From assembly GCF_006345805.1 (NCBI RefSeq), contig NW_021836134.1, positions 62,001 through 126,000 on the forward strand: a stretch of DNA of 64,000 nucleotides. Direction: 5' to 3'. Source of the stretch: Octopus sinensis. Lineage: Eukaryota. The stretch's first letter is position 1. Every line of letters starts with the position of its first letter. The notes below the pieces were generated by a model that was given only the letters and a program-made list of their open reading frames with translations, was not told the origin of the DNA and did no database searches. This document shows positions 1 to 55,133 of this stretch, in pieces. Made by a program: the position numbers and the translations under genes.

Positions 1-2918
1 TGTGACAGAACATATCCGGGTGCATGTGCTTGGAACACATCTGGTCGCACATTCCCCACTACCAGTAATCCACTACACTACCAGTAATCCTATGCAGGAC
101 AGACTCGTGTTCAAATCCACCTTCCCCGTGGCAAATTGGACGACCAAATCAGCGAGAATGTGGACATTTTCCACACACATGTTCTCCAAGTGTCGTTCGG
201 ATATTGTCTGGACAGTCTTGAATGCCTTCTTGGTATCACTGTCATGTCACAACAGGCCATTACACTCCCCTCAGACTGTTCAATAAGAGTGACCACACTT
301 CTCCCTCCGTCGGACATGTTGATAATATCAAATTGATACAATCCAGTTGAACTCGTCTGCACTCCTCGTCGTGGGGAAGGAGGCGACCACCCGAGTAACT
401 TCAACATGCAATAGAATGACCACCATCAAAAGATCTGTACGAATTGACAAGAGGCGAATATGACAAGTCCTGAGACAAGACCGAGAGTGGCCGTCCTTAG
501 TCGTTTGTTGAGAAGGAAAGAAGTTGAAGAAGACAGTCGGTGGCCATATTCCACCACACATCGACCTTGGCAGCACACAGTCCACACAAACTCCCCAATC
601 CAGGCAGCAAAAAAAGAGGAGTTGCATGTCCTCCTAACATTAAGAGTGCCTATACCTCGTGGTGACTCAGTTTGCCCAGTCTGGCGATGTGGGACAGGAC
701 TTGCAGCTGGTCGTCCTTAGCACTGCGAATAGACAGACACACCAACCTGACATATCGGCATAGTCCGGGGATCAGACACATCTTATCCCACACAATCTCG
801 AAGGGGGGTCCTTCACAGGCACTGCAGTTGGAGGTGGAGAGCACATCCATGACTGCAGTGAAATTGAACGCAGGTCTCATTCCACGCAAAATGGCCATGT
901 TCTGGGAATATCAAACACACCCACATTAAAACACAACACAAGAGGACCCCACCCAGCCTCCAATCCTCCCTCGGAAACCAATCGAATGAGGACCTGTTCT
1001 GCCATTTCCCTTTTACGACGTTCCTATGAATGTACAGAGAAATGTGACCACACTATGAATACTTCCATAGACATCTTCGTACACGTGGGAGTACCCGAAA
1101 TCTGCAAGTCGACAGAAACCAGTACAGTTCTCCAAATACGTGTGCACATTGTCGTAGGATAACACTCCCGTGAATCTCCGAGGGAGCATCGCGGAGGACA
1201 CGAGTGCCACCAACAAGTCGACTTGGCAAGTCAGTCCCCGCCTATTCCACTCTCGCACTACTCCCTCCACCAAAGAAAGCAAATTAGTCATTTGAGAATC
1301 GCAAGTACTACAAATAACAACGAGAAGCCACCAGGATATCATAAACAGACTGAGGGATTTCACAATGTCCTCCAAAACAAGAGAAATGAGCAGAGGACCT
1401 CCCAAAGTGTCCAGAAAAAGGGTCAGCTTGGCCAACATGTCCTCCATCTGGTCATAGATCAGATTCAGCACGTGTGCAGGACTAACCGAGGGTGCCTCCC
1501 CCTCCCCCATATTGACACTGGACGATTAGGAGGGTCATCTACCAGTGCACTGAACACCCGTCCGTGTAGACCAGTTTGATGAGAGGATAAAACACGTTTC
1601 CGACACGGAATCCCATCTGGTCATAAAATTCCGCAATTCCGTGATTTTGACTCCACAAAATGGATTCACTCCAACAGAGGGCAGAATATGTACTCAGACT
1701 CACTTTGATGGCCTTAAAGTAGCAGGACCTCCTCTCACTGTCCTCCAACTCCACCGCCCTGCCACTCTCTCGCCAACCAAACCTTCTAACAAATGCGTCC
1801 TCAAGGAAAGCCTGCAGGGTCTCTGCGGCCAGAGAATAAAAGAAGACGTTCCGGTCTCCCATGAGGACCAGTTTAGACAGGAGACAGGCAATGAGATGAC
1901 TCTCCAGTGCCTACCACATCAAAACGTGTCCAAACCAGAAAGTCAAATGTCCTGACTAGTAGGAATACCAATTTCATCAATTGTTGTCTTGCCGAAAAGG
2001 ACACGTGCAGAAATTGATTTTCGAATGTACGGCCGTGGGACAAGAGTTGGACAACGACCGAGCAGACCTGTGTCCTAACCAGGTCTCGGAAGACCTCTTT
2101 CTGGAATGATGTGACACCCAAACCATGCTAAACAGCTTGTTGTTCAATACTGAAATAATTAGTTCAATAGAAAGGGCCATGCCCCCCATTTTCTGAATCC
2201 ACTTGGATTTGTCGCCTCCGGCCACTGCACACAAGTCCTGAAATAAAGGCAAAAGTGACCTGAATGAACATGTAGGCGTCCCCCTCATAGGAGTTGAGTC
2301 CCGGGGGGAGAGGACAGTCACTCACTCTCCGCGGAGTGGACGGGTCGTCGTTCAATGTCAGTGCACGATCAAATACAGAGAAGGCCAACTGATTGACCAC
2401 GGCCAGGCCTGCCATGCACGTGGTTTGTGTTGGTGACCCAATAACCCCGAAACAGAGGGAAATGACCTGTCGGAGGACATCCGAGGATATGTGCTCGTAC
2501 ATTGCCACCAGCGAAGAACACGTCTGGAGGACCCGGAGTTCCTCGATTCCGTTATTGGCAAGAAGGGAGAGGAGGGAGACCAGGTGGTCCACGCCTGCCT
2601 GAGAATAAGTCTGGTCACTACGTTGTCCAGGGCAGTCTTTGTGATGCAGTATCTGATCGACTGCAGACCGATTTTCACGGCTGAGGGAATTCGCGAATTG
2701 ACTGCCTCGAAGAAGGGGGAAAGAAAGGGGACTGAGTTTTCTCGCATGGCTTTAATCAGAAATTCATCTTGTTTAATATCTGAAAGCAGTTTTATTGTGT
2801 TTACACACGACTATATTTAGGAGATTTGGAATTACTGTTATTAGGTGCTCAGATTTCTTTTTGCTTGATTTTTAAGAGAGTTTAAATCCCTGGTCAGAAT
2901 ATCTATGAGGTCAGTCAT
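1..2918 (-). CDS. MON2: MON2 homolog (Golgi/endosome ARF-GEF-like trafficking scaffold), 5' part, multi-exon, continues beyond window start
   Basis: Spliced reading gives MTDLIDILTRDLNSLKNQAKR..., MRENSVPFLSPFFEAVNSRIPSAVKIGLQSI, LANNGIEELRVLQT, GDAYMFIQ|DLCAVAGGD and VDLNTSLSCIGLL|WGMCDQ. These follow the remembered MON2 DCB/HUS motifs (ENSLEELKLLQT, KDAYMLFQDLC, LNISLTSIGLLWNISDY). Introns seen: 2811-2835 (25 nt), 2599-2621 (23), 2238-2259 (22), 59-81 (23), among others. Exon 1 needs a 1-nt correction. Confidence 0.9.
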
Positions 2919-7157: not shown

Positions 7158-7544
7158 ATGAATTTGCAAAATTAAAAATTTCCTACTTGCTAAAGTAATA
7201 TTTCCTACTTGCTAAAGTAATGGAACGTCTGTCGATTGCTGTGATCCGAGGGAACGGCTTCGCCATTCGCGAGGCTGGTCGGGTGTCTCGTGAGGCCTTT
7301 AATTAACTTAGCTATCTTTAATTTATTTCTTGCTTTCAAAAAAAAAAAAATTCCTACTTGCAAGATTGGTTTTTCCTAGCCGCAAATTAAATTTCCCACT
7401 TGCAAACCGATTTTCATGACCGCAAATTAATTTTCTTGATTGCAAAATTGACTTTCTTAACCGCAAAATCATTTCTAATTGCAGAAATGAGTTTACTGAC
7501 CGCAAATTAAATTTCGTACATGCAAAATAGAGTTGTAAATGGTA
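7158..7544 (+). repeat. Right subterminal degenerate ~21-bp tandem array (interrupted by a CRE tail)
   Basis: GCAA anchors spaced 22,20,20,20,21,18,21,20 nt in 7360-7530, alternating CCGCAA and TTGCAA; duplicated near 13600-13987. Confidence 0.75.
7221..7350 (+). mobile_element. Extreme 3' fragment of a CRE-like retrotransposon with poly(A) tail (second copy near 13661-13790)
   Basis: Encodes ERLSIAVIRGNGFAIREAGRVS*, matching the REL C-termini of other CRE copies here (QRLSTTVVRGNSHAIL). Followed by an A13 run; TTCCTACTTGC occurs on both sides. Confidence 0.7.
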
Positions 7545-7546
7545 TA

Positions 7547-8530
7547 GTTAAAATCAATAGAGGTATACTGCAAGGAGATTTTCTCTCATCTCTTATCTTT
7601 GTGTTGTTAATGGACCATCTAAGCCGAATGATCAACGGAAAATTCCCGAAAGTAATGACGGGAGACTCAGGCAGGGGGAACCCGCATATGCTACTAACCA
7701 CCTTCTATTATGGACTATATAAAGCTATTTTCCAATTACAATGGCGTAATGGAAATGATGATAGAGAAAGTTGAATCTTTTTTGACATAGCTGAATTGGA
7801 AAAAAAACGTTTAAAAATTTACGACGAATTTCAAGTCTGTCTATGAAAACTTGCTTACTTGATGGGCTCGATGAATAGGGTCTTTGAGCCATGAGAGTTT
7901 GGTCAGATTGATAAGAATATCGGTCGAGTTTTATGGACAAAAATATCCGGCCAAAAAAACTTTATCTTTCAAGAAAGGAATTTGGGAGTGACCTGGAGTC
8001 AGTTAGCAATAAAGCGGAAAGGATGCTTCTTCAATTTTATGGTGATTTGAAACATAAAACAAACTACTGCCTAAAAAGAACAGGAATTCTGCGTCCATTA
8101 ATTTAAAGAAAATACATATGGCCACTACCGTGGAATTCTTATCCTGAGAATACAATGAAACTGTAAATGAATAGACAGTATCGGACCTGCCGAAAATTCA
8201 ACGCGAATATTTATTGGGAAAATATCGAAAACAAGCGTTTCCAATCTATTTTGTTCCAATGCATAAAGAATACTGAAGTTGATGTTAATTATGCTTGCGG
8301 GTTGTTAACCCATGGAAACAATTCCCCCGTCGAAGAGTGCAAATTACTCTGTGAAGATTCGTATCGATACAACAATAAATTCAAATACTAAAGTCCAGAC
8401 TAACGAGGCGGACATGAGGAGCACAATCTGCTTATAGAGATTGTGATAACCTCCCAAAAAGGCCTCATCGATTAAAACTTGCAGATTGTAGAAATTTTTG
8501 AGTAACCAGCCCATCCCATGTTAATACAAT
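7547..8530 (+). pseudogene. Degenerate R4/Dong-like non-LTR retrotransposon (RT and REL remnants); copy at about 13990-14980
   Basis: VKINRGILQGDFLSSLIFVLLMDHLSR (RT) and LLIEIVITSQ...LQIVE (REL). The frame continues across the empty IS630 site into 3190-3206 (TYISG|LVKINRG). Confidence 0.7.
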
Positions 8531-9845: not shown

Positions 9846-10689
9846 CTAGCTCGACAGCTCGCTTCGCTCACCGCGACCTAGCTCCTGCGGAGGGCCTGTT
9901 TCATCAAACAACTATAAGTTTATGTAGATGTATAAAACTACCTGGTTTAATGTAACCCTATTCTATCGCCTGTTGATAAACGATGTTTGTCGTCCGTCCT
10001 TCCTTGGCATATATGAATAAATTTTCTCTTCTGCCTACCCTCGAGCATCCCACATACAGCTGTCCATGTGAAAAGCACTCACTCTCTAAAAATAACCCAA
10101 CTACCTTTAATGACTGTCCCTGGGCCTTGTTTTTTATATTTTTTTTGTTTTTAATTATTTTTTTTTTGTTTTTTTTGTATTTTTTTTAATTTTTAATTTC
10201 TTTGTCTGTATTTTTTTATTTTTTTTGTTTTTATTTTAATTTTTTTGTTTTTTTATTTTAATTTTTATTTATTTCTTTTTTTATTTTTTAAATTTTTTTG
10301 TTTTATATGTTCCCTCTGTTCTATATTTAATTGATCTAATATAATTACAAAATTCAACATTAATATGAGCATCAAAAATCTTACATAACAGTGGATTATA
10401 AGGCACCACCCACCTGTTGTCAACTGTCATTTCATTTTCTTTTCCTTCTTTAACTTTAAAAAGATGATTCGGCATTCCAGAGGGATCAAAGTAGTTTAAA
10501 AATTCAATCCGGTTGAATTTTTAGAAAATAACAAAAAAAATAAAAAAAAACAAATAAAAATAAATAATTTAAAAACAAAAAAATAAAACAAACAAAAAAA
10601 AACTTTAAAAATTTGTAATATAGTATAAACAAAAAAATCTCTGTCGCCACGGCAAAAACCTGTCTAATTTTTTTAACAGCCTATTAAGA
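9846..10689 (-). mobile_element. Non-autonomous internally deleted Helitron
   Basis: On the minus strand it starts TCTTAATAGG and ends with a GC-rich hairpin-like segment then CTAG|T. Retains the Rep fragment DNRWVVPYNPLLCKIFDAHINVEFC and the Pif1 helicase C-terminus NKAQGQSL...CFSHGQLYVGCSRVG. Confidence 0.85.
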
Positions 10690-13556: not shown

Positions 13557-16280
13557 TATATTGTTTAAACGCATTAATGTTGCGTCGAGGTTATACAAAA
13601 TGAATTTGCAAAATTAAATTTCCTACTTGCTAAAGTAATATTTCCTACTTGCTAAAGTAATGGAACGTCTGTCGATTGCTGTGATCCGAGGGAACGGCTT
13701 CGCCATTCGCGAGGCTGGTCGGGTGTCTCGTGAGGCCTTTAATTAACTTAGCTATCTTTAATTTATTTCTTGCTTTCAAAAAAAAAAAAAATTCCTACTT
13801 GCAAGATTGGTTTTTCCTAGCCGCAAATTAAATTTCCCACTTGCAAACCGATTTTCATGACCGCAAATTAATTTTCTTGATTGCAAAATTGACTTTCTTA
13901 ACCGCAAAAATCATTTCTTAATTGCAGAAATGAGTTTACTGACCGCAAATTAAATTTCGTACATGCAAAATAGAGTTGTAAATGGTATAGTTAAAATCAA
14001 TAGAGGTATACTGCAAGGAGATTTTCTCTCATCTCTTATCTTTGTGTTGTTAATGGACCATCTAAGCCGAATGATCAACGGAAAATTCCCGAAAGTAATG
14101 ACGGGAGACTCAGGCAGGGGGAACCCGCATATGCTACTAACCACCTTCTATTTATGGACTATATAAAGCTATTTTCCAATTACAATGGCGTAATGGAAAT
14201 GATGATAGAGAAAGTTGAATCTTTTTTGACATAGCTGAATTGGAAAAAAACGTTTAAAAATTTACGACGAATTTCAAGTCTGTCTATGAAAACTTGCTTA
14301 CTTGATGGGCTCGATGAATAGGGTCTTTGAGCCATGAGAGTTTGGTCAGATTGATAAGAATATCGGTCGAGTTTTATGGACAGAAATATCAGGCAAAAAA
14401 AACTTTATCTTTCAAGAAAGGAATTTGGAAGTGATCTGGAGTCAGTTAGCAATAAAGCGGAAAGGATGCTTCTTCAATTTTATGGTGATTTGAAACATAA
14501 AGCAAACTACTGCCTAAAAAGAACAAGAATTCTGCGTCCATTAATCTAAAGAAAACACATATGGCCACTACCGTGGAATTCTTATTCTGAGAATACAATG
14601 AAATTGTAAATGAATAGACAGTATCGGACCTGCCGAAAATTCAACGCGAATATTTATTGGGAAAATATCGAAAACAAGCGTTTCCAATCTATTTTGTTCC
14701 AATGCATAAAGAATACTGAAGTTGATGTTAATTATGCTTGCGGGTTGTTAACTCATGGAAAAAATTCTCCCGTCGAAGAGTGCAAATTACTCTGTGAAGA
14801 TTCGTATCGATACAACAATAAATACAAATACTAAAGTCCAGACTAACGAGGCGGACATGAGGAGCACAATCTGCTTATAGAGATTGTGATAACCTCCCAA
14901 AAAGGCCTCATCGATTAAAACTTGCAGATTGTAGAAATTTTTGAGTAACCAGCCCATCCCATGTTAATACAATAAGTACATTAACCAAGTGTCTGACTCT
15001 GCAGTTCCTCGCGTAATTCGTAGAATTACTGTGGCAATGTTTTAATTAGAATATGGTTTATTTTTTATTAATTATTGTTTAATTATCTCAATTTTTAATG
15101 GTAAACCTAAAAAATTATTCCACATTTGAGCACGCAGTTGATTCACCTTGTGGTGCTGTGTATATAATTAACTCTTTTCTTAATTTTTTATATTATTGGA
15201 TTTAGTTGGAATATTTCGAGATGCAGTTTCTTTTAATGATTAAATTATTTGAAATTTCATCATTTTGTGATATTTTTCGAATTTATTCCTATAATTTGTT
15301 TCTTTTACCCATTTTGAAATTTCTGTAACGCTAATATTTTTTGAAATATTTATTTATTGAATTTTTAATCATTTTTTGTAATTTTTCATATACTTGTCGT
15401 TTTCCCACGACCACTTAAGTTTTTTATATACAGTATAAACTCTATTTGGGCATCAATTTTGTAAAATTGCCTGAAATTTTTTTCATTTTTTTTATAAACA
15501 TAGCATTTTAAGTACTAAAAATTTTTATTCTATTGACGAGTTTTTCGTTATCCTTTGTTCATTTGTAACGGTGAGTCATGTAATATGTCGCGTCCCACAC
15601 GAGCTACCCATCCCATGGTAGTACATGTCACCTGTCAATAAATAATAATGCCTGTCGGTGACTGTCAAATTTAATAATTAATTTAATTGCATTGATTTCT
15701 AATCAATAATCGTTTCAACAATAAAAATTTATTAAAATAAAGCGTCTACGTTTTTTAACTTGCCTCACAAATATCTAAATTCCAATATAAAACATAAATA
15801 TACTTATTGCAGATGTATTTTAACACCTTTACAAATGGCATACTTACTGTAAACGTCAATGACGGTAAATATCCATTTGTAGCCACGTTCGAATCGTTAA
15901 ATTTTTTAACGTCTTTTAGGTCTGCTTGGAATCGTTCATTTGGTTTTTTGGCAATCGCATGGTACTTAGAATCTGAAACCTGCTATATAAGTTTTTTATT
16001 TTATACTTTAAGTGGAATGGAAAACTTGCATATTGAGTACTCTTTGACGACTCGTTCGATAATTTACGCTTATTGTAAAATAGGAGTGTAGACATTCCTG
16101 TTGCAGTTTACGAATTCCAGAATGGCTATTCCGGTGAATAGAATCTGCAATAGTTTGCATCTCACTCTCATTATGCATGCAAATAACTAGTTTGTGCTTT
16201 TGAAATCTTTCGTCTTTGAGGTATAAGCAGTCATCAATGACAATAAATTTAGTGGATTTTTTAGTTAATTTATAAACTTA

Positions 16281-19200
16281 CTAGCTCGACAGCTCGCTTC
16301 GCTCACCGCGACCTAGCTCCTGCGGAGGGCCTGTTTCATCAAACAACTATAAGTTTATGTAGATCAGTGGTTCTTAACCTTTTTTAAGTCAGCGCCCCCT
16401 TTTGACACAATTTCGAAGCTTCAAAATTTCAGCGCCCCCCTATTATTTAATTTATTTTTTTTCAATTATAGATTTATTTGGCAATTTTTTCGCCAATTGT
16501 TTCATTTTAATATTTTCGAATATTACTTATTATTTTTTTAGAATTAAAAAGGGTATTCACAAACCAAACTTTTTTATATAAAAAAATTTTAGTGACTGCC
16601 TTGTGCTTGATGGGAATTTGTCAATCGTTTTATGTCAGCTTCAATAGTCGACAGACTTAGTCTCAAATCTCCTCTATTCACAATTTGTAATTTATTTCTT
16701 TTTTTGGTCAAAATATTAGAGACTGCACTAAATCCTCTTTCAACTAGATATGTTGAAGGAAATGCTATTATAAGTGTTTCAATTTCATTCCACAATAAAG
16801 GATATTTTTTCTATGAGTAACCCAGAATTGTTGATATCCATATTTGTTGAAAATGACTTTAGCTTCAAAGTCATATTTCAGATTTAATAAATTTTCTGTT
16901 ATTTCTTGAGATAAATTAACGTTTTCAGTTTCAAATGGATTTATATACCAATCAAAAAATTTTAAATTTTCTAAATCTTCAAAGCGGATTTTCATGTCAT
17001 CTTTTAACATTTTTAGATGCAAGCAAAAGCATTCACAGTCAGAATCCGTTAATTTTTCGACCTAATAAATATTATTACAAAAAATAACCCCAAATTTTTG
17101 TAGATTTGGAAAATTAATAAAAATCTTTTTCTTAATATTGTTTTCATAAAGTTGTAATTTTTCAATAAAAGGCATAATAATTCCTTTTACATTTATTAAA
17201 TTGATATTGTTTCCTTGCAAGCTAATATTTACTTGGTTGATTTTATAAAAAATATCAGCTAGATAAGCTATATCAGCTTTCAATAAAATCAACTTACTAA
17301 AATGATTAAGGAATAATTACCTAAAAATTCTCTGCTCATGTAACTGACAAAATTCTAAGATTGAATCATACAATTCAAAAAATCGACACAAACAGTTTCC
17401 TTTTGAAAGCCATCTAACATGGGTATGCAAAAGAAGTCGTTCATAATGCTCATCGTTTTGTTCACAAATATGTCGAAATATTCTCGAATTCAATGGGTGC
17501 ATTTTAATACGATTTATTGCACATATGACAACATTTAGTGATTCATTCAGCCTCTCACTTAAATTTTTCGCAGCTAAATGCTGTCTGTGAATGACGCAAT
17601 GGATTGTAAAATATTCGGTACTTTTTCCTTCATATATGCCAAAAACCCACGATGAACTCCAACCATCGCAGGTGCCCCATCTGTTGAACAAGCAAAAATA
17701 TTGCTAAGGGTATTTCATGTTTCAAAAAATATTGTTCAACAGTTTTGAAAATTGTTAATCCTCTTGTATCGAGTTCAAGGTGTTCAGAAAATAAAAATTC
17801 TTCTTGAATTACATCATTTTGATTAATATAACGTACGTAAACTAATAAAAGTGCAACACTATCGTTGAATGTCGATTCATCAATCTGAATTGAAAATTTT
17901 GTTGTTCTTAAAAATGCACATAGGGTTTCTTCGATATCAAATGCCATTTCATCAATTCTGGAAGAAACAGAACTATTACTCAAAGGAATTGATGAAATTA
18001 TTTGTTCAGAATCACAATCAACCATTGAATTTAACACTTCTTTGATAGCTGGTAATATTAATGACTCTCCAATAGTATGAGGTTTTCCTGATTTCGCTAT
18101 CAATTGCGATATTTTGTATGATGCTAATAGGCCTTTTTCAAGCATCTTCGAATTTTTTGTAAATAGTTGATTAATCATAAGACGATTTTCATAATTATAT
18201 TTCAGATTAGAAAAATAATTGATATCCGCATCAAGTTTGTCAGGATGACAAATCTTAAGATGATTTAGCATTCTTGAAGGCTTCATTCCTTCATTTGTAA
18301 AGACCTTTTTACACATAAGACACATTGGAAGTGAATTGTTATGGTCGTAGGGTATCACTCCAAACTTTAGGTATTCATCCGAATATATACGTCGTTTTAC
18401 TTTTTTATCAGACATCTATAAATATAATTAAATATTTATTAAAAAGTTCTAAAATATTAAATACAATTAACAAATATTTATAAATATTATCAGTGAATAA
18501 TTTTTTTACGTACACACAAGACAATTTGAATTTAGAATTAATAGAAAAGCACGTGATAATGATTTACAAAAACTAATAAAATATTTATAATAATTAAAAA
18601 AAATTAAAATTCCAGCGCCCCCCTAATATGTTCCAGCGCCCCCAGGGGGGCGCCAGCGCCCCCGTTAAGAATCACTGATGTAGATGTATAAAACTACCTG
18701 GTTTAATGTAACCTATTCTATCGCCTGTTGATAAACGATGTTTGTCGTCCGTCCTTCCTTGGCATATATGAATAAATTTTCTCTTCTGCCTACCCTCGAG
18801 CATCCCACATACAGCTGTCCATGTGAAAAGCACTCACTCTCTAAAAATAACCCAACTACCTTTAATGACTGTCCCTGGGCCTTGTTTTTTATATTTTTCT
18901 TTTTTTTGTTTTTAATTATTTATTTTTTTTGTATTTTTTTTTTTTTAATTTTTTTGTTTTTTTTATTTTTTTTTAATTTTTAATTTCTTTGTCTGTATTT
19001 TTTTATTTTTTTTTTTTTTTATTTTAATTTTTTTTGTTTTTTTTATTTTAATTTTTATTTATTTCTTTTTTTATTTTTTAAATTTTTTTGTTTTATATGT
19101 TCCCTCTGTTCTATATTTAATTGATCTAATAGAATTACAAAATTCAACATTAATATGAGCATCAAAAATCTTACATAACAGTGGATTATAAGGCACCACC

Positions 19201-19480
19201 CACCTGTTGTCAACTGTCATTTCATTTTCTTTTCCTTCTTTAACTTTAAAAGATGATTCGGCATTCCAGAGGGATCAAAGTAGTTTAAAAATTCAATCCG
19301 GTTGAATTTTTAAAAAATAACAAAAAAAATAAAAAAAAAAACAAATAAAAATAAATAATTTAAAAACAAAAAAATAAAACAAACAAAAAAAAACTTTAAA
19401 AATTTGTAATATAGTATAAACAAAAAAATCTCTGTCGCCACGGCAAAAACCTGTCTAATTTTTTTAACAGCCTATTAAGA
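16281..19480 (-). mobile_element. Helitron copy 2, interrupted by the hAT element
   Basis: 5' junction A|TC at 19481/19480 and 3' junction CTAG|T at 16281/16280; same internal sequence as 9846-10689. Confidence 0.85.
16365..18677 (-). mobile_element. hAT Buster-type (ZBED5/SCAND3-like) transposon, copy 1
   Basis: TIRs CAGTGGTTCTTAAC and GTTAAGAATCACTG, 8-bp TSD ATGTAGAT, subterminal AGCGCCCCC repeats. Transposase at 16589-18415 with introns 17297-17320 and 17062-17088. Confidence 0.95.
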
Positions 19481-23100: not shown

Positions 23101-24524
23101 GTCTCAAACTGTGATCCTGTTATTTTCACTTTATAACGACTCATATCAACATTCGATGTGGTGGAAATTACACTTTTTAAACAAGAAGTCTAGTTACTAG
23201 ACTATTTAATTTGAAATATCTCGAAGCAACGCCATCCCACGTCAAGACAATCGGGATAATCTTTACCTTTGCATCATAAAGTATTGAAAGTTCGTTTGCG
23301 AGCATATCATATTATGAAATTTCTCGGTTTCGACTTGTTTGAGGCGGTCTTGGAAGTGATGCCAACTTCGATTAGGGTTATCTTTTGTTTAGTTTTGTCA
23401 TAGACGAAAATATGTCCGAATAAGTTGCAATTTGTCCGAATAAGTTGTAACCAATATCCTCGATTAGTTGTCCAATCGTATTTGCTTCAAGACTTATATT
23501 TTTAAATACATGAACCAAATGTTCGACTCTTTAGTTCCTTGCGTAATTTAAAGAATTATTATTTAACCCAAGAATCACTAACAGTTAATTAGGGTAATTA
23601 ATTAGGTGATTCCAACAATCCTCAAAATCCTTCTCAGCTTTTCCCGATGTTGGACTCTGGACCCAACGCAAGTGCGGGACGGGCGGGGAGCAGTTTTTGA
23701 GAGGAATTGTATCGGGGTGATGTGCTTCTTGTTGTTAAAGTCCTTTGGCAGGTGGTCTTGTTGGATGGCTAAGAAACCCTTTCCATCTTTCTTAATAAGT
23801 TGGTCAAGCGGAGTTGGGGTAATGTTGTTCAATTTGGAAATTTAAAGAATTACTGTGGCAATGTTGTAATTAGAATATGGTTTATTTTTTATTAATTATT
23901 GTTTAATTATCCTATTTTTAATGGTAAACCTAATAAATTATTTCACACGTGATCACGCAGTTGATTCACCTTGTGGTGCTGTGTATATAATTAACCCTTT
24001 TCTTAATTTTTTATATAATTTGATTTAGTGGGAATATTTCGAGATGCAGTTTCTTTTAATGATTAAATTATTTGAAATTTCATCATTTTGTGATATTTTT
24101 CGAATTTATTCCTATAATTTGTTTCTTTTACTCATTTTGAAATTTTTTAACGCTAATATTTTTGAAATATTTATTTATTGAATTTTTAATCATTTTTTGT
24201 ACTTTTTCATATACTTGTCGTTTTCCCACGACCACTTAAGTTTTTTTATATACAGTATAAACTCTATTTGGGGCATCAATTTTGTAAAATTGCCTGAAAT
24301 TTTTTTCATTTTTATAAACATAGCATTTTTAACCACTAAAAATTTTTATTCTATTGACGAGTTTTTCGTTATCCTTTGTTCATTTGTAACGGTGAGTCAT
24401 GTAATATCTGACATGGGCCAAATGATACTTATGCGATGTGCGTTACAATGGCCTTCAATTAATGTTAATCTGTCAGTTTATCGATTAACTTCAAACAATC
24501 TTGTTATTGATTTATTGACTAGAG

Positions 24525-26840
24525 CAGTGGTTCTTAACCTTTTTTAAGTCAGCGCCCCCTTTTGACACAATTTCGAAGCTTCAAAATTTCAGCGCCCCCC
24601 TATTATTTAATTTATTTTTTTTCAATTATAGATTTATTTGGCAATTTTTTCGCCAATTGTTTCATTTTAATATTTTCGAATATTACTTATTATTTTTTTA
24701 GAATTAAAAGGGTATTCACAAACCAAACTTTTTTATATAAAAAAATTTTAGTGACTGCCTTGTGCTTGATGGGAATTTGTCAATCGTTTTATGTCAGCTT
24801 CAATAGTCGACAGACTTAGTCTCAAATCTCCTCTATTCACAATTTGTAATTTATTTCTTTTTTTGGTCAAAATATTAGAGACTGCACTAAATCCTCTTTC
24901 AACTAGATATGTTGAAGGAAATGCTATTATAAGTGTTTCAATTTCATTCCACAATAAAGGATATTTTTTTCTATGAGTAACCCAGAATTGTTGATATCCA
25001 TATTTGTTGAAAATGACTTTAGCTTCAAAGTCATATTTCAGATTTAATAAATTTTCTGTTATTTCTTGAGATAAATTAACGTTTTCAGTTTCAAATGGAT
25101 TTATATACCAATCAAAAAATTTTAAATTTTCTAAATCTTCAAAGCGGATTTTCATGTCATCTTTTAACATTTTTAGATGCAAGCAAAAGCATTCACAGTC
25201 AGAATCCGTTAATTTTTCGACCTAATAAATATTATTACAAAAAATAACCCCAAATTTTTGTAGATTTGGAAAATTAATAAAAATCTTTTTCTTAATATTG
25301 TTTTCATAAAGTTGTAATTTTTCAATAAAAGGCATAATAATTCCTTTTACATTTATTAAATTGATATTGTTTCCTTGCAAGCTAATATTTACTTGGTTGA
25401 TTTTATAAAAAATATCAGCTAGATAAGCTATATCAGCTTTCAATAAAATCAACTTACTAAAATGATTAAGGAATAATTACCTAAAAATTCTCTGCTCATG
25501 TAACTGACAAAATTCTAAGATTGAATCATACAATTCAAAAAATCGACACAAACAGTTTCCTTTTGAAAGCCATCTAACATGGGTATGCAAAAGAAGTCGT
25601 TCATAATGCTCATCGTTTTGTTCACAAATATGTCGAAATATTCTCGAATTCAATGGGTGCATTTTAATACGATTTATTGCACATATGACAACATTTAGTG
25701 ATTCATTCAGCCTCTCACTTAAATTTTTCGCAGCTAAATGCTGTCTGTGAATGACGCAATGGATTGTAAAAATATTCGGTACTTTTTCCTTCATATATGC
25801 CAAAAACCCACGATGAACTCCAACCATCGCAGGTGCCCCATCTGTTGAACAAGCAAAAATATTGCTAAGGGGTATTTCATGTTTCAAAAAATATTGTTCA
25901 ACAGTTTTGAAAATTGTTAATCCTCTTGTATCGAGTTCAAGGTGTTCAGAAAATAAAAATTCTTCTTGAATTACATCATTTTGATTAATATAACGTACGT
26001 AAACTAATAAAAGTGCAACACTATCGTTGAATGTCGATTCATCAATCTGAATTGAAAATTTTGTTGTTCTTAAAAATGCACATAGGGTTTCTTCGATATC
26101 AAATGCCATTTCATCAATTCTGGAAGAAACAGAACTATTACTCAAAGGAATTGATGAAATTATTTGTTCAGAATCACAATCAACCATTGAATTTAACACT
26201 TCTTTGATAGCTGGTAATATTAATGACTCTCCAATAGTATGAGGTTTTCCTGATTTCGCTATCAATTGCGATATTTTGTATGATGCTAATAGGCCTTTTT
26301 CAAGCATCTTCGAATTTTTGTAAATAGTTGATTAATCATAAGACGATTTTCATAATTATATTTCAGATTAGAAAAATAATTGATATCCGCATCAAGTTTG
26401 TCAGGATGACAAATCTTAAGATGATTTAGCATTCTTGAAGGCTTCATTCCTTCATTTGTAAAGACCTTTTTACACATAAGACACATTGGAAGTGAATTGT
26501 TATGGTCGTAGGGTATCACTCCAAACTTTAGGTATTCATCCGAATATATACGTCGTTTTACTTTTTTATCAGACATCTATAAAATATAATTAAAATATTT
26601 ATTAAAAAGTTCTAAAATATTAAATACAATTAACAAATATTTATAAATATTATCAGTGAATAATTTTTTTACGTACACACAAGACAATTTGAATTTAGAA
26701 TTAATAGAAAAGCACGTGATAATGATTTACAAAAACTAATAAAATATTTATAATAATTAAAAAAAATTAAAATTCCAGCGCCCCCCTAATATGTTCCAGC
26801 GCCCCCAGGGGGGCGCCAGCGCCCCCGTTAAGAATCACTG
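24525..26840 (-). mobile_element. hAT Buster-type transposon, copy 2, nearly identical to copy 1
   Basis: Same TIRs; 8-bp TSD GACTAGAG at 24517-24524 and 26841-26848. Confidence 0.95.
24748..26576 (-). CDS. Buster-type hAT transposase, about 592 aa after removing two introns and one homopolymer indel
   Basis: Zn-finger CLMC...HLKICH, FSIQIDEST, CSTDGAPAM, HCVIHRQHL, HTHVRWLSKG, STYLVERGFS. Introns at 25457-25480 (24 nt) and 25222-25248 (27 nt). Confidence 0.85.
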
Positions 26841-26848
26841 GACTAGAG

Positions 26849-27989
26849 TCTAGTTGAGTCTATCAAATGGTTTTCCTTTTTTTGCGATCTCGTGGCTTAT
26901 CAAAAAATTGGTAATATTTGCAGTCCTGATACCAATATTTAAAAGCGGAATTCTCAATCTGATTATTGTGATACCAATATTTAAAAGCGGAATTCTCAAT
27001 CTGATTATTCTTTGCAAGTTCTCCTACAGCTTTGTTTCGCAAATCACCAATTGGATATTTTGTTGCTTTTTCACTCTTTCAATCTTGAAATATGTTGGTC
27101 AGTTACAATGTTCCCTTTATCGTCTTCTAGAACATACAAATCTCCATTAAAGATTCTGACATAATAAAGTGTAGTATCTAGTCCATCATATAAAGGCAGC
27201 TATGGTCGATTTGCGTCCGAATCAGTTCTTAAAATCACCCGATCTCCCTCAATTATCACATCTTCGTCGTATTTCTACTTTCGCCTCTTTATCATTTTAT
27301 TTTGTCCGTTGGATTTCCGCATTTTCATTTTGACCATCAAAATCTAATAGTGCTTCCAATTTCCTTTTTTCGTATTTTTTGGAAAGATCCACGTTGAAAA
27401 ATATTTCGAAGGGTCTCTGCTTTGTTGTATCGTGAGTAGAATTGTTGTAATCACGAACAACATCTTTTAGGAAATGGATGTAGCATCCAAAATTTCCTCT
27501 CGATCCACCTGCATTGTTCCTGGCGTTTGTTTGCACTTGGTTTGCACCAAGGGGATCCACCTGCATTGTTCCTCTATCTGGATTAAGCAACAAAAAATAC
27601 CGTTCGACTTGTCCCTGTATCCATGGTGCTCGTGGCCGTCCAGAAACATGAGAAATGTTATATTTTTCCCAAAGTTGTTCCATATGAGAATTTTTGAATT
27701 CCTTTCCGTTATCGGTATGAAGAATTGTTTCAGTAAAACTTTCGATCCACCTATTATAGGGTCCTCATCGTATCTCCATTTTCGTTTATTTATCATTTTT
27801 TCTCCGGCAATAATTATATTCGTGTATGCATTTTCTTGTGCATCAGATATCGCGGAATCGATCTCATATGCCTTCATTCCTTCAAGATCCAGATCTGATA
27901 TTGTATTTGGATATTCACAGCCCATAAAAATGTAAAAAAAGGAATTTGTTTCGTAGTATTATGCATCTTGTTGTTATAATCAAAAATTA
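26849..27989 (-). mobile_element. Ginger-like integrase C-terminal region, degenerate (continues at about 24405-24524 across the hAT)
   Basis: GRPRAPWIQGQVER, DVVRDYNNSTH, KRKWRYDED. Confidence 0.65.
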
Positions 27990-38014: not shown

Positions 38015-40625
38015 TTAACTTCTGAGAAGTTTGTTCCTCAGACGGAGGTCCTCGATATATGTGACAAAGTCCTTTTTGGTGATGATTCCACCACCTCACT
38101 ACACGACAGTCTTACCACATACGCACTTATTTTGGTGATCAAAACTTGCCGGATTCCCAACTTTTGGAACATTTCCAACGTGATGTGGATAGACCCGAAC
38201 ACAGTCATTGTCATTGGACTCTGTGGTTGGCCCAAAGACCTGACCTGGTCGAGGATGACGGAGAGTCTGGCCGACTTGTGCTGTTCCGGGCGAGGACCAG
38301 AAAAATAGACGATTGTGCTATCGGAAAATCCATTCAATCGGTCTGTCATTAAGTAGAAGGTGTACCCAGTGCATATTCGAGGTCTCTTCGATAAACAAAC
38401 CCCGCCAACACTTTGTAGTGCCTGGACACGACCACTGGAAATCCGTTATAGTTCGTTTCCTCGAGAATTTGTTCTGAAATGGAAAGAAATGAATACTGAT
38501 TTCGGAAATGGTCATTTTGTTCTGCTCGATGACAGTCAGTTCGGCCGAGTTGTCCCTGCGAGTGAATGCCCAACAAAACATTGCGTGAAGAACGTCATTG
38601 GCCGTGCCACTCTCGGAAATCTCGTCCTTTCCATCGAGGAATGGGAAGCCGTTCAGATGGATGTGTCGGTCGTATCTATGAAATAAAACCAGTGCCTACA
38701 TCCCCTCCTTCCCAAACCAGTCAGCAATCCACTTGCTGGTCATTGTGGCCATCATTATGGGGATTATGTAGGAAATCCCGCCAGTCATCTCGTACATAAT
38801 CACCACCAGGGACACTACTATAAATACTCAACAACACCAGTCATTCGGGTGACCCCCCCAAGTGTGGCGGCAGCTCCCACAAGCGCGTACACTCCGGGGT
38901 TGATCACAGCCACCAGAGAGGTCGAGTTGATGTAGAACGTCCTACAATGACCATAGTCCCCAACCGGGCAATCTGCTGCACTCCTATGCCCACGATTCGC
39001 CCCATTATGGCCCCCGCACAAATCGTGGGAATGAATAATCCAGCAGGCACCTTCGAATAAGTCCACACAACACCTTCAGTCCAAACGTGGTCACCGTGAA
39101 CACAAATTTGAGGACAAGGATGATGACCAACTGCCACATGGAAGTGTATATTCCAGCCCCAAGAGAAGGGTTCCCCTGACGGTCCTGCCCGACCGAGTAG
39201 TCCCATTGGTAGTCACTAAGACATGGAAAAGTCCACTACCAGAGTGGATTGGAATCTCCGACGTGGCAGGCAGCAAAGAGTTGTCGGATGAAGGAATTGG
39301 AGTCCTGACGAGTGAAGGAGAAGGGGTACGAGGCCAAGACAGTAACAAGAGTGACCACCACAACCTAAAATAGTAGGAAAGAGAGACCTCAGTAATAGGA
39401 AACCTCCCTATAAAAGAATTCTTTCTGTAGGCGCAGTATTTGACGTTAAGTCGAATAAAGAGAACTCCATAAAACCCCTGAATAGAGAGGAGAGACAACC
39501 CCGATTATGCCCAGGAGGAGGAAGGGAATTAGTTCGACGTAAGCAGTGGGATCGTCGTAGCCAATGTAAAACAGAATGTCCTGACCACCCCTGTTGACGC
39601 CCGACAGATGGACGGCAAATGTGGCCACCAATGCACAGAAGAAAGACCTCCAAATAGTCTTGAGGGGAAAAAAGTAGCTCACTTCTTCCAGGCTAAATAG
39701 AACCCCTCCCACAGGGGCACCAAAGGCCACCGAAACACCCGCAGCCACGGCCGAGGACAGAATCTGATAAGTGAGTCATCACACCTCTCTCTTCTTGACT
39801 TCATTCCGCCTGAACTTGGGAAAGAGTTTGGAAATAAGATTGCCAATCGAACAGCAAATCTGCACGAACGGACCCTCCTTTCCCAACGACAGTCCCCCGG
39901 CCGAAGACAGAACTATTCCAAAACATTTGATGATAAGTGTCCACGTGCTGAGGTACCCCCGAATGATGTAACCACTCAGAATGGTCTTCATCTGAAAGTG
40001 AGTGAAGACAATACCTCGGGAATGCCCGACCCACTGGCGTAGGGGGCGAGGAACTTAACCATCATGGCTGCGGCAGTAGTGTAGAGCACAGAGAGGAGAC
40101 AAAACATGAAATAGTCGAATATATATGCACCATTCTCCTTTCCCCCTGCCAATTCCGACCAGGGCTTCCACTGCCAGTCAGTCACTCCATTACATTGGGA
40201 CACGTCTTGGAGTCCACTGTGTTGTTGGCAGTCCAGCAGCAGTCCTCTCTCCCCAGTAGACGGTCGGATAGACAGATTCCATGCACAAGCGAGCCCATCC
40301 ACTTGTAGGACATATCGATATAGGCAGCCGTCAGTCCCGAAAGGACCCCCACGATAAGAATGCAGATCCAAGACGACGAAGAGTCGAAAATGTACTTAAA
40401 AAGTCCGACCGATGACTTTTTTGACTCGACTACAATTTGTCTATGACGAATGCGGTTTCGCTGAAAGTTCCGTTGCCAGTCGATCGTATGGAAGTCGTCG
40501 TATTTCACGGCTTCCATCATTTTCAGGTGGAAAGACCCCCGAGAATGGTCGGCTACTCCGTGGAGACATTGCCGTCCGTCCACGGCCACGTCAATGAACT
40601 CGTCGTCCGAAAGGTGCACGTCCAT
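38015..40625 (-). CDS. CLCN3/4/5: CLC-3/4/5-type 2Cl-/H+ exchanger with C-terminal CBS domains, about 15 tiny introns
   Basis: [20 protein letters not shown] (gating Glu), [10 protein letters not shown] (proton Glu), PAGLFIP, GGVTRMT, NGFPVVV, GIITKKD. Example introns: 40171-40193, 39992-40014, 39764-39784, 39216-39239, 38676-38699. Confidence 0.95.
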
Positions 40626-41020: not shown

Positions 41021-42302
<1,282 letters not shown>

Positions 42303-42361: not shown

Positions 42362-45300
42362 TCATTTAAGTGAGGGGAATGTGGCCATTCTTAGTCGCTC
42401 GGCCTCTGCCCGAAGTGTGGCCAGTTGAGTGGCGTTCTCCTGAATTTGGTCGACCATTCTTCTCCGCATGACCATGTCTGCGTAGCGACTGGTCCTCTCG
42501 TCGATTTCGTTTTCGTGTGCTAAGAGTGAGTGGCGTGCTTACTGTTCATTTCATAAGTTATTCTCCGTTCACTCACTTCCACGCCAACCTCCAAATTCGT
42601 CTCCAACAGAGTCTCGTTATTTTTGAGCACACGCCTGTTTTCAGAGCGAAGGACTGAGAGGAGATTCTGCTTCTCCCTGATGACTTTGACTCCGTGCTGC
42701 AGTGACGGCACACCAATACCTCCTGCTGCTTGACTATGGCCTGTTCCAGTGCTGAAATTTCCCCCTGACTGGTAGAGTTGGCGAACGTGTTGGAAATGAC
42801 CTGCTATGAGGAAACCATTACTTTGTGCATATCTCTGGAAACCTTAAAGTTTTTGATTTCTCTCATTCGGTTGATAATGTCCTCGTATTGCATTTCCATC
42901 TTCTTGTGCTCCCTACAAGTGAGTAGGCGACTGTGCCATTCGAGTTGTGCTATCGAGTTCATCACGTCCTTGCCCTCCCTCATTATGCCTACTTTAACGT
43001 TCGCCACTTTCTACCACGTCCTCATGGAACACCACCTTTATGTCCGCGTTTAGTTCCTCCACGATCGACCTCTCCAGCAGCACCGCGTCGGAGTAATTGC
43101 GGATTCCATTCTCCACGTTTATCTCCACTTGTCCCTGTTTTATCGCGAATTGGATCTCCAAGTTGTAGTATAACTCATTTCTCTTGTCCGCAATCCTATC
43201 AGAGTGTCCACCACCACCAACATTCCAAATGTCCGCGTTATTTCCGGCACTACCACCTTCGTCAAGTCCTCGACTTCTTTCGTCGTCCTTCCCTGCAGAC
43301 ACGCGGCCTCCGTCACCTGAATGTATTTTTTCTTCATCTGCAGTAGTGTCACACGCTCACCTGGAACTCGCTCTCCAGTTTCTGTCGTCGGAAGGCGGAG
43401 AATCTTTCCCACACGTGAGGGTCCACGTCGTCCGGGCGCTGTGCTTCGGCCAGTTTGAGGGTGTTCTCGGCGTGTTTGTAGGACTGCAGCAACTCCTCGA
43501 TCGTGTCAGCACTCCTCAGTCTGCCGTGTCACCTTACACATTCACTTTGGACGTTTTTTGAATATTCTGGACAATCTTTCCGCCCAAGTCGAGTCGAACT
43601 TGGATTTGAGGCTTTTCTCAAGCATTTTGTCGGTGGCCACCAGGATGTCGTACTCCTCGTGAAGTCCCTCGATTATCTGTCGACACTGCTCCCTCAACAA
43701 GGTTTTCCGTTCCTTTCTATTTGAGGCACAATTACAATTTTGTTTTGCGTCGCTGCCAACTTGTTTCTCATCTCGACCTCCCAAAAATCCAATTCCTGTT
43801 CTACCAAAATGAGTCTCTTCATTCGGGCGATGGTCACCTCTTCCTGAGATCTTGGCCTCACGACAACCTGGAATATCGCCGACTGGGAGTTTATTCGACT
43901 TTTGAATAAGTTGTGCAGTTTCGAGTCAAACCCTTTCATCACCTCCTCTATCGAAGAGTCGATTTTCTTGATTTCGTTTTCCAGGACCTGCCGTGTACTC
44001 AAAAATGACCTTTTTGTATTGCTCGTATTCTTCCATGTTCTGTTTCAACTTACGATTGTATTCTTCTGCAAGGTGCAGTTCTTCTACCGTCCACTTTGTC
44101 TGGTCTTTCTCCGCCATAAAGCTCGGCATTTCCGGTTCCTGACCATAATTACCAGCTAAACCTTCCACACGAACTCTTTCTTCACTTGGAGGACTCCTTC
44201 CATCATCAGCTTGAGCCCCCGTTCTCTCCAATTATCCCCATCTGTGCCCTCCATGTCATGTGCAGTGCACGTGTGGTCGCTGTATTTAAGTTTTCCTGCA
44301 ATCTGGCGGGTTATATCGTAGAGTGACCTCCTCCTCTGAGACCAGGAACATGTCGGATGGGTTCTCGACCGGTGCTAGTTTGTAGGGAGTGTCAATGGGC
44401 ACAGTTCCACTTAATTCTTTCACGATCTTGGCCTTGTTTTCGATTTTCTGGTTGATTTGAATAAGTGCTTGTCTCTTCAGTTGCAATGTTTCCTCAAATA
44501 AAGCATTGAAAGACGTCTTGATTTGCTTAATGTTTCTCTGGAGTAACTTCACAGCACTACTTCTGAGAGGCGGATCTGGTCGAATCGGTACTCCATCGAC
44601 TGCGGGTGGAACTGCGTGTGCAGTGGCTCATCCAGATAACGTTCCTGGTGGGCCTACACTGTGATTTGAAGTTGTCAACCGAGTCGTCTACGAGATCTTG
44701 AATCAACTGCAAGTTAGGTGTGATAGTCAACCTTTCTTTCAAACGTGCCTGTTTTGTCTCGGGATTCCATTTTGTGAATTGTTTCCGTCTCCCGCTCGCA
44801 CTGTCGAAGCATCGGGAAATTGCAGACTTGCAAATCTCCTCTGAACATCTTGGAATAAGCACGTGTTCAATAACAAGGAGGGATTGTCCCTTCACTTCGT
44901 AGTTGTCCCAGTACTTGGACTTGATTTGAGACATCTCCGCCGCCTTGGACATGTTCTCCTCCTCGCAGTCGAGTCTCATCTTTGGAATGACTGAAGAAGG
45001 TACCCGATTGATGGCACTGTCGCTCTCCTCGTAGGCACGGGACTCCCTCTCGACGTCGATCACCATTTCGGCCAACTCCAATCTCTCCGTTTCCGGCAGT
45101 TCTTCATTTTCTCGTCGAATCAATTCAATCTGGTCATTTAATGTGGCTACTCACCGATTCCCTGATTTCCTCAAACTTGGATCGGATGTCCCTCTTTTGT
45201 TCTGAGTATTTCTCATTTTCTTTGATGTTGTGTTCGAGTTCACGTTTTTCCTTCCACGTCAAGTCGTCCAAGTTGAGGGAATACACGTCAAAGTCCATTT

Positions 45301-54540: not shown

Positions 54541-55133
54541 TGGAATGTTTAGTAAGAAGATCACTCTTAATAGCTTAATAGCGGTCGGCAGGATCACTCT
54601 TAATACTATTTCTTGTTTTTCAAAAATAAAATTGTTCTTGTAATTTTTTGTATTTTTTAGATTTTTTAAATCGGTCGATAAAAAAATACATCTAATTGAA
54701 TTTTTCTGAGTTAGTCAAGTTCATTTTAGTAACATTGAGTAAACCATTTCTGAAATAAATATTTGCAATAAATAAGGCCTTTAATTAACTTAGCTATCTC
54801 GCTACAAAATGAAGTTCACGTTAAAATAAGGCGTAAGAAATTAATGTGTACAAAAAAATATTTTCAAAAATCTGCACGTCAAATTAATTTAAAAAAATCT
54901 GTAGATTATTCGCGTGTATTTTATTCTGACTGAGACATCTTGTAATATGCAACGCCCACTGTGAGCAACCATGCACTACCAGAAACCCAACGAGTTTTAA
55001 TCAATATCACGATAATAGGATTTGATAGACATTTTAGATAATGAAATGATTTATCATCGAATTAATAAAAAGAATGAAAGAGGTCACATAGCCTTGGCGG
55101 ATAAAATTGTTTAGCTAAAACAGCCATTGTGTC

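Follow-up and report, generated by a model that had tools for sequence, protein, structure and literature searches.

A 23-nt MON2 intron at an apparently old position, with an interior that probably derives from its own 5' junction

Animals with introns of 20–27 nt have been characterized only lately, and how introns are kept up at this lower length limit is an open question. Introns this short are known in two animal groups alone, the myxobolid myxozoans and Dicyema (Hadjez et al. 2026, PMC13644364), and median lengths of 22–27 bp have been reported for Dicyema japonicum and the myxobolids (PMC13644364; PMC6736024). In this study, we analysed an intron of 23 nt in a MON2-like trafficking gene at the edge of a 64-kb stretch of DNA (contig NW_021836134.1, positions 62,001 to 126,000, of the Octopus sinensis assembly GCF_006345805.1); this whole stretch is referred to below as the window, and all coordinates follow its numbering, with minus-strand features read from high to low position. 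Both junctions of the intron are covered by copies of one perfect 15-nt repeat, and we propose that the interior of an ancestral ultra-short intron has probably given way, in a recent event, to a locally made duplicate of the intron's 5' junction.

Direct repeats at intron ends have been described before. According to the tandem-duplication (Rogers/AGGT) model, an intron is one repeat unit with AGGT at both junctions (PMC3443670; examples in PMC3265369 and PMC4974935); the sequence at the end of the upstream exon recurs at the 3' end of such an intron and that at the start of the downstream exon recurs at the intron's 5' end, and removal of one unit restores the exon (PMC3443670). New introns of Daphnia carry footprints of double-strand-break repair, with repeats of 4–12 bp that abut the junction, and lie at novel positions (PMC4202315; Farlow et al. 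PMC3020277). In addition, dual-specific splice sites have been described, which are AGGT motifs that can be used as 5' or 3' splice sites (PMC10809524).

The junction repeat and the intron that it spans

Exactly one family of direct repeats was found by a repeat search of window positions 1–400. It consists of a 15-nt unit, CACTACCAGTAATCC on the plus strand, which occurs at 57–71 and 76–90 with 100% identity and a spacing of 19 nt. On the minus strand, from which the gene is read, the unit is GGATTACTGGTAGTG, with perfect copies at 90–76 and 71–57. The features of the locus are the following.

239..263, minus strand: neighbouring 25-nt intron, GTAATGGCCTGTTGTGACATGACAG
82..238, minus strand: upstream MON2 exon, which encodes ..V DTKKAFKTVQTISERHLENMCVENVHILADLVVQFATGKVDLNTSLSCIGLL and ends GGA TTA CTG (G L L); placed by three-frame translation, mite tblastn and alignment
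59..81, minus strand: predicted 23-nt GT-AG intron, GTAGTGTAGTGGATTACTGGTAG, phase 0; placed by the need of the reading frame, the Mon2_C match and its modal length
1..58, minus strand: start of the downstream MON2 exon (WGMCDQMCSKHMHPDMFCH..), which extends beyond the window; its W and D match the conserved W-N-x-x-D
76..90, minus strand: repeat copy 1, made up of exon GGATTACTG (90–82, the last 9 exon bases) and the donor GTAGTG (81–76)
72..75, minus strand: 4-nt spacer TAGT between the copies, which with the bases before it gives GTAGT GTAGT
57..71, minus strand: repeat copy 2, made up of intron GGATTACTGGTAG (71–59) and exon TG (58–57); its GTAG is the source of the acceptor AG (60–59)
65..68, minus strand: TTAC within repeat copy 2; its A, at intron position 16 (window 66), is placed like a branch point
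41..62, minus strand: cryptic 22-nt GT..AG segment, GTAGTGGGGAATGTGCGACCAG, beginning with the copied donor of repeat copy 2; its use is not predicted, and it has no A at the usual branch position

The minus-strand context reads TGC ATA GGA TTA CTG / GTAGTGTAGTGGATTACTGGTAG / TGG GGA ATG TGC GAC. A first-pass annotation, made from the letters of the window, had placed a 23-nt intron at 59–81 exactly between GLL and WGM and had described a 15-mer occurring twice with a 19-nt period, once over the donor and once over the acceptor, and both statements are borne out by the codons on either side of the segment (GGA TTA CTG before, TGG GGA ATG after) and by the two perfect copies. Its remark that the intron is almost wholly copied from adjacent sequence is a fair one, in that intron positions 11–23 are a copy of the last 9 exon bases plus GTAG while positions 1–10 are GTAGT twice. 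With GGATTACTG as A and GTAGT as B, the junction region is laid out as A-B-B-A-B, followed by GGGGAATG. No further exact copy of the 15-mer is present in the 64-kb window. When up to two mismatches are allowed, the 15-mer has three matches in the window against 0.01 expected; a near-match at 54974–54988, GGGTTTCTGGTAGTG, was considered as a related copy and set aside, as it lies in an AT-rich non-genic setting and looks unrelated. The whole 23-mer has no second copy at up to three mismatches in the 64 kb searched, and thus the dispersed copies expected of an introner or a transposon-derived intron were not found.

The gene, at 2918–1 on the minus strand, is MON2-like, as judged from its translated sequence. 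Its N-terminal region matches the MON2 N-terminal DCB domain (PF16213) with an E value of 6.9e-24 and 85 bits, against a cutoff of 25.6, and when the 113-aa DCB exon was used in an exhaustive HMMER scan, four distant matches were obtained, namely N-terminal fragments of the MON2 type and a single full-length MON2. The latter, the sole full-length match, comes from a mite; in the junction region it has 87% identity to a protein of the mite Euroglyphus maynei that is named MON2-like. The absence of a Sec7 domain between the DCB/HUS and C-terminal regions separates MON2 from BIG/GBF proteins, and no Pfam match to Sec7 was found in the approximately 870 spliced residues, a range that includes the uncertain model of 570–264. 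The DCB match and the full-length mite protein thus sustain the MON2 identity given in the first-pass annotation. Further searches returned nothing: this holds for a homologous-protein search with the 867-aa spliced protein, a sequence search of the PDB and a search of metagenomes for exact matches to the exon. With a metazoan MON2 N terminus as the query, short fragments alone were obtained, which are uninformative on the junction.

As far as sequence can show, 81–59 is a functional ultra-short spliceosomal intron of 23 nt with GT-AG ends in phase 0. Without splicing, the reading is GLLVV followed by TAG, a stop two codons into the intron, and under the standard code all stop-free spliced paths from the N-terminal region to position 1 include 81–59. 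Four versions of the product (spliced, read-through, with one 19-nt unit deleted, and truncated at GLL) were compared with the Pfam Mon2_C profile. A sub-threshold match was obtained for the spliced product only (E 0.012, 14.2 bits, 7 residues beyond the junction), and none for the read-through, 19-nt-deleted or truncated version. In tblastn, residues 1099–1131 of the mite MON2 protein P0004 align to 174–82, ending precisely at the junction. In a multiple alignment, the spliced product ..DLNTSLSCIGLL/WGMCDQM aligns without a gap to ..ELNVSL[TS]A[IV]GL[LVI]/WN[IVE]AD[FY]L, with F, L-N, S-L and G-L invariant and with W and D common to every sequence that reaches that far; GLL/WGMCDQM matches the MON2 pattern GL[LVIM]/WN[IVTE][AS]D[FY][FL], and the motif F..LN.SLS..GL.W...D is common to the window protein and the MON2 fragments. 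Together with the modal length described below, the need of the frame and the spliced-only Mon2_C match argue that the segment had been rightly read as an intron.

Local norms were taken from gene models made with a codon-score dynamic programme (standard code, GT-AG introns of 18–60 nt), which gave five multi-intron genes; their predicted introns and the two MON2 3' introns make up a catalogue of 61. Lengths of 21–27 nt are found in 54 of the 61, and the mode is 23 nt (22/61). The 5' tetramer seen most often is GTAG (9/61), which also ranks among the commonest 3' tetramers (9/61) and is found at both ends of the MON2 intron; the donor hexamer of this intron, GTAGTG, is the commonest of the catalogue (4/61). 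Among the 22 introns of 23 nt, A is found at position 16 in 10 and at position 17 in 13, and G in 0 and 1, respectively, and several others besides the MON2 intron have TTAC or TTAT at positions 14–17.

An old position and a repeat beyond chance

The first-pass annotation had suggested that the orthologous site be compared in related species and alleles, and a comparison was carried out with 15 MON2 loci of other organisms that are not close relatives, namely contig L001 and 14 loci from a profile-guided scan of metagenome contigs. A phase-0 intron at the same codon boundary, after GL[LM] and before W, is present in 8 of the 15 (L001 and L009–L015). Seven of the 14 scanned loci read uninterrupted through GL[LMV] WN..D, while in the other seven a GT follows directly on the GL[LM] codon, as GTAAGG, GTATAG, GTAAAG, GTAAGA, GTAAGT and, twice, GTAGTG. 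In five of these (L009, L010, L012, L013 and L015) the next exon starts exactly at ..ttcag/TGGAA (WNISDYFYQNR..), 59–1636 nt downstream. The remaining case came from a protein search with the mite junction region, which yielded fragments of exon size. In one of these, P0100, ...VSLTAVGLL is followed by VGAGTSSCLF, and its contig L001, which is genomic, reads CTC CTG / GTCGGT at this point, with the preceding MON2 exon 320 nt upstream. At L014 (1069-) and L015 (78-) the intron at this position begins with GTAGTG as in the window (TTG/GTAGTGTTAC), which is probably a coincidence.

Because 8 of these 15 loci have an intron at precisely this boundary, the position is taken to be ancestral, and the GL[LM]/W phase-0 intron would be an old and widely retained MON2 feature that the window's intron occupies. 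This bears on intron gain, according to which an intronless GLL-W site received, through tandem duplication or in the repair of a double-strand break, a filler of 23 nt that now acts as the intron. Gain would account for the recurrence of the last 9 exon bases near the far end of the intron, which is reminiscent of the exon-terminal repeats (4–12 bp) of new Daphnia introns (PMC4202315; PMC3020277). However, besides the age of the site, the CTG/TGG junction is not an AGGT proto-splice site, the period of 19 differs from the intron length of 23, removal of one unit does not open the frame, and the exon copy does not abut the 3' junction, from which it is separated by GTAG. We therefore regard gain as very improbable. 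The comparison of distant loci did find an intron at the orthologous site, and the suggestion of a de novo gain found no support in it.

A scan of introns for junction repeats against a shuffled null, which the first-pass annotation had suggested for the whole genome, was run on the 61 introns of the window, taking as the statistic the longest exact direct repeat within the intron and 15 nt on each side. The MON2 intron scores 15, far beyond chance. The scores of the other 60 are 4 (20 introns), 5 (26), 6 (8), 7 (5) and 8 (1), which is as predicted by the null of 122,000 shuffles (36% score 4, 40% score 5, 15% score 6, 4% score 7 and 1% score 8), and the junction-copy pattern is seen in none of them. 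A score of at least 12 was reached by 8 of the 122,000 shuffles, and 15 by one, giving P(>=12) = 6.6e-5 per intron. It could be argued that the repeat merely combines chance with splice-site preference, the GTAG ends being consensus and the rest coincidental. In favour of this, both ends show a preference for GTAG (9/61 each), with GTAGTG as the top donor hexamer, so that about 6 of the 15 matched bases come cheaply; yet for the other 9 nt, the exon copy at its fixed offset, the probability is about 4e-6 (4^-9), and the shuffle value amounts to only about 0.004 over 61 introns, which leaves this explanation scarcely credible. The repeat is a real duplication and a single case among the introns of the window. 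The second-longest junction repeat, ATTCATAG, at 1024–1060 on the minus strand, has one copy in exon sequence, 4 nt upstream of the donor, and a second one that closes the 25-nt intron 1048–1024 at its 3' end (period 29); it is within chance, with P(>=8) of about 1.4% per intron and 0.9 expected among 61.

Similar duplications are found outside introns. The window contains nine perfect, non-low-complexity direct repeats of at least 14 nt within 45 nt or less (eight of them independent), against 0.005 expected from shuffles that preserve local composition. Besides the MON2 repeat these are eight, of which seven are independent, two being copies of one element. They are 14–41 nt long with spacings of 20–42, lie in non-genic or transposon sequence, and are located as follows.

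23413-23447: short-range repeat
63004-63058: short-range repeat
26927-27009: short-range repeat
7178-7221 / 13618-13661: short-range repeats
22610: short-range repeat
51616: short-range repeat
54559: short-range repeat

The form of a repeat with a spacer of a few nucleotides is also seen at 23413 (15 nt, spacing 20) and at 63004 (24 nt, spacing 31, 7-nt spacer). The repeat at 63004 is close to the 3' end of a retroelement-like open reading frame (ORF) at 62509–62940. Short local duplications thus seem to be a frequent class of mutation in this genome, and since they also occur in non-genic DNA, no process specific to introns is required. Intron and junction sequence makes up about 5% of the window, and at such a share it is unremarkable that one of eight duplication events fell on an intron; the remarkable point is that the duplication left an intron of fully normal appearance.

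How the intron body may have been rewritten

The reading that we consider probable is that of an ancestral ultra-short MON2 intron, in an animal with introns that have shrunk throughout to about 21–27 nt (a dicyemid or a myxobolid myxozoan), and of a recent local duplication of the 5' junction that took the place of the intron's interior. In such an event, 15 nt (exon GGATTACTG plus GTAGTG) would have been re-inserted 19 nt downstream with a 4-nt spacer, replacing the intron body, and the copied GGATTACTGGTAG, which amounts to 13 intronic bases, would serve as the 3' half of the mini-intron. The acceptor (TAG) would then be the AG within the copied, favoured donor motif GTAG, and the copied leucine codons would provide TTAC, with its A eight bases before the acceptor AG, where the 23-nt introns of the window prefer an A. 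The TG at the right end of the copy is also the TG of the conserved Trp codon, which resembles a 2-nt microhomology and may be due to chance. All 13 copied intronic bases are identical to their source, and this suggests that the event was recent. The likely cause would be a short local duplication or a templated repair, by the same process that may have given rise to the eight other repeats of the window. Loss of the old intron body would be required too, either within a single complex repair, in which a deletion was coupled to a templated copy of the flank, or stepwise, by duplication and subsequent deletion to the preferred length or by deletion and a compensating duplication; the mutational mechanism and the order of events are what we infer from the present arrangement. 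Rewriting by local duplication or repair is plausible and the best reading of this one sequence. The proposal of the first-pass annotation, intron gain or rewriting by repair, may accordingly stand in its second half, while the first half is contradicted by the ancestral site and by a period of 19 against an intron of 23.

Removal of one repeat unit leaves GGATTACTG-GTAG-TGGGG, that is 4 extra bases and a +4 frameshift. A plain 19-nt insertion into a normal precursor was considered and rejected, because the single copy would need an intron of 4 nt or else one of 22 nt that removes the conserved W..D motif. The latter is the starting point of a two-step rescue, in which an imprecise deletion shrank the old intron to GTAG, the donor then used the AG 22 nt further on at the cost of WGMCDQ, and a later 19-nt duplication restored an acceptor before the Trp and with it the full protein. 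Deletion of one unit does give exactly A-GTAG-TGGGG, in which GTAGTGGGGAATGTGCGACCAG/ATG is a frame-keeping 22-nt GT-AG segment, each of the steps is a simple mutation of a type found in the window, and deletion of introns in the manner of non-homologous end joining via splice-site microhomology has been proposed (PMC3020277). However, the intermediate would have had to be viable without the conserved W..D motif, the 22-nt segment has no A at the preferred branch position, and the scheme is not more parsimonious than a single complex repair event. Overall we consider this sequence of events unlikely.

It is also conceivable that the 19-nt unit was spuriously doubled during assembly or polishing. 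A probable homopolymer indel elsewhere in the same gene (A5 run near 2860) lends some weight to this, but the gene would be frameshifted by +4 if the second copy were absent, whereas in its presence the intron is of exactly modal length and its signals are normal. Long-read errors are typically homopolymer indels of 1–2 nt, and a perfect 19-nt duplication is untypical of them. The argument from the frame makes an artefact unlikely, and taking all points together we would give it very little credence.

Finally, the copied donor might have a function, namely as a decoy 5' splice site, with the choice between donors 81 and 62 switching between a productive mRNA and an isoform that contains a stop or is 6 residues shorter. 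Copy 2 does recreate a perfect CTG/GTAGTG donor with a 22-nt GT..AG behind it, and sites able to act as 5' and as 3' splice sites are known (PMC10809524). Splicing of the cryptic 62–41 alone leaves an in-frame TAG, while joining donor 81 to acceptor 41 (41 nt) deletes WGMCDQ in frame. Against such a design, the event appears recent and lacks the support of conservation, the cryptic intron has a poor branch context, and the pattern does not recur in the other 60 introns; a functional role of this kind is, in our opinion, highly unlikely.

Several points weigh against the rewriting of an old intron as well, or against the intron on which it is built. The catalogue was made ab initio and holds some errors, with the CLC intron 40034–40015 probably wrong. 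The 14.2 bits of the Mon2_C (PF16206) match fall below the curated cutoff of 27, the first 46 profile positions alone lying inside the window, and downstream of the junction the frame is supported by the 19 codons (58 nt) within the window, which is a short motif. An alternative intron of 20 nt, with its donor at 78 (GT at intron position 4), would also be in frame and would add one Val; it is less likely because the homologues do not have the extra residue and because the sole 20-nt prediction in the catalogue looks wrong. As a single-copy precursor (GGATTACTG GTAG TGGGG) would not be viable, an additional deletion has to be postulated, and the history is not reducible to one simple insertion.

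The case would show that duplication of a 5' junction can provide the whole 3' half of a mini-intron, with a branch-like A and an acceptor, at once, and that very young sequence is possible in an intron at a deeply conserved position. It also carries a caution for studies of intron gain, in that junction-spanning direct repeats, which are usually a sign of new introns, can arise in ancient ones. One could go further and suppose that, in genomes with introns as short as splicing permits, intron bodies are renewed from copies of their own 5' junctions, as a general route of upkeep of which the MON2 intron is a fresh example. If this were true, a junction copy would be a ready-made 3' half-intron, since GTAG contains AG and nearby codons offer a branch A, and junction copies could rescue introns that deletion had pushed under the length limit. 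We think such a general route quite unlikely. Being a single instance of a pattern unseen in 60 neighbouring introns, the MON2 intron is an illustrative curiosity and not a new mechanism.

Genomic context and comparison with known systems

Elsewhere in the MON2 gene, exon 1 (2805–2918, minus strand) breaks at an in-frame TAA (2843). Addition of one A to the A5 run at 2858–2862 gives MTDLIDILTRDLNSLKNQAKKKSEHLITVIPNLLNIVV, joined through a 25-nt intron (2804–2780) to YIKQDEFLIKAMRENS as a continuous MON2-like N terminus, and a homopolymer indel of the assembly within exon 1 is likely. Tiny introns together with in-frame TAA and TAG codons near the MON2 start had raised the question of a ciliate code (TAA/TAG = Gln), under which the TAG met on reading through the intron would no longer be a stop. 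This code was rejected because transposon ORFs and the CLC, PI4K2 and CFAP43-like genes read cleanly with the standard code, and the N-terminal MON2 break is explained by the 1-nt homopolymer indel rather than by a ciliate code; an earlier dynamic programme with TGA as the sole stop had given poor models, and the standard-code and codon-score versions were substituted for it. The model of 264–570 (minus strand) is uncertain. Its homology-supported frame (..DCLLQLLSFSTND ... EGEVWSLLLNSL) has an in-frame TAA and TGA, nothing in other MON2 proteins corresponds to the approximately 190 nt between STND and EGEVW, and another frame is open for about 105 codons.

The window is rich in ORFs of long interspersed nuclear element (LINE)-type reverse transcriptases, hAT and Tc1/mariner elements, all in the standard code. 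Large repeats are found at 16805–18007 versus 24965–26169 (100%), 7801–8100 versus 14244–14543 (98%) and 9957–10256 versus 18712–19011 (87%); a hAT-type transposase ORF is present among them in two copies, and poly-T/poly-A low-complexity tracts lie at 10130–10602 and 18885–19393. The neighbouring host genes, with 5–25 tiny introns each, are the following.

38086-40625, minus strand: CLC chloride channel
41063-42206, plus strand: type II PI 4-kinase
42383-47394, minus strand: CFAP43-like cilia protein
48681-50792, plus strand: coiled-coil protein

Myxozoans are not known to be ciliated. The GC content of the window is 37.8% (mean of 32 2-kb bins), and for Dicyema japonicum, which is ciliated, a GC content of 36.7% and 49% repeats have been reported (PMC6736024). 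On this circumstantial evidence, the 37.8% GC, the LINE-rich repeats and the intact CFAP43-like gene fit Dicyema better than myxozoans.

As to the intron itself, it has the GT...AG ends, the narrow-peak length and the A before the AG by which ultra-short introns are recognized, and its removal restores frame and homology. It is like the introns of Dicyema japonicum and the myxobolids (PMC13644364; PMC6736024) in its GT-AG ends, a length of 20–27 nt, signals cut to about GTa...AG, a weakly conserved A at a fixed distance before the AG, and a conserved metazoan position. It differs from them in having a body copied from the intron's 5' junction, a feature absent from the accounts in PMC13644364 and PMC6736024; no functional difference is apparent.

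With the Rogers model it shares a local direct duplication that supplies one splice site, the copied junction motif being reused as the other junction. However, here the period is 19 and the intron 23, and one unit removed leaves a 4-nt GTAG remnant; the junctions are CTG/GTAG and GTAG/TGG, with no AGGT; the intron start, GTAGTGTAG, is unlike the start of exon 2, TGGGGAATG; and the position is already present in other animals. The nearest described pattern is that of the new Daphnia introns, which also have statistically non-random repeats and for which secondary internal duplications have been reported too, whereas the MON2 intron lies at an ancestral site, its 15-nt repeat extends over both junctions, and the 9-nt exon copy lies 4 nt (GTAG) from the 3' junction.

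The likeness to dual-specific splice sites would be that CTGGTAG appears as the donor in one copy (G/GTAG) and as the acceptor in the other (GGTAG/); the motif is GGTAG and not AGGT, and two copies share the roles that one site has there. Microhomology-mediated end joining of the polymerase-theta type leaves templated insertions and short scars of a duplication plus filler. By analogy, the MON2 intron may carry such a scar, with a 15-nt copy of the flank about 20 nt away, a 4-nt spacer and a 2-nt TG identity at the junction, and similar scars appear to be present elsewhere in the window; replication slippage or unequal exchange could yield the same product.

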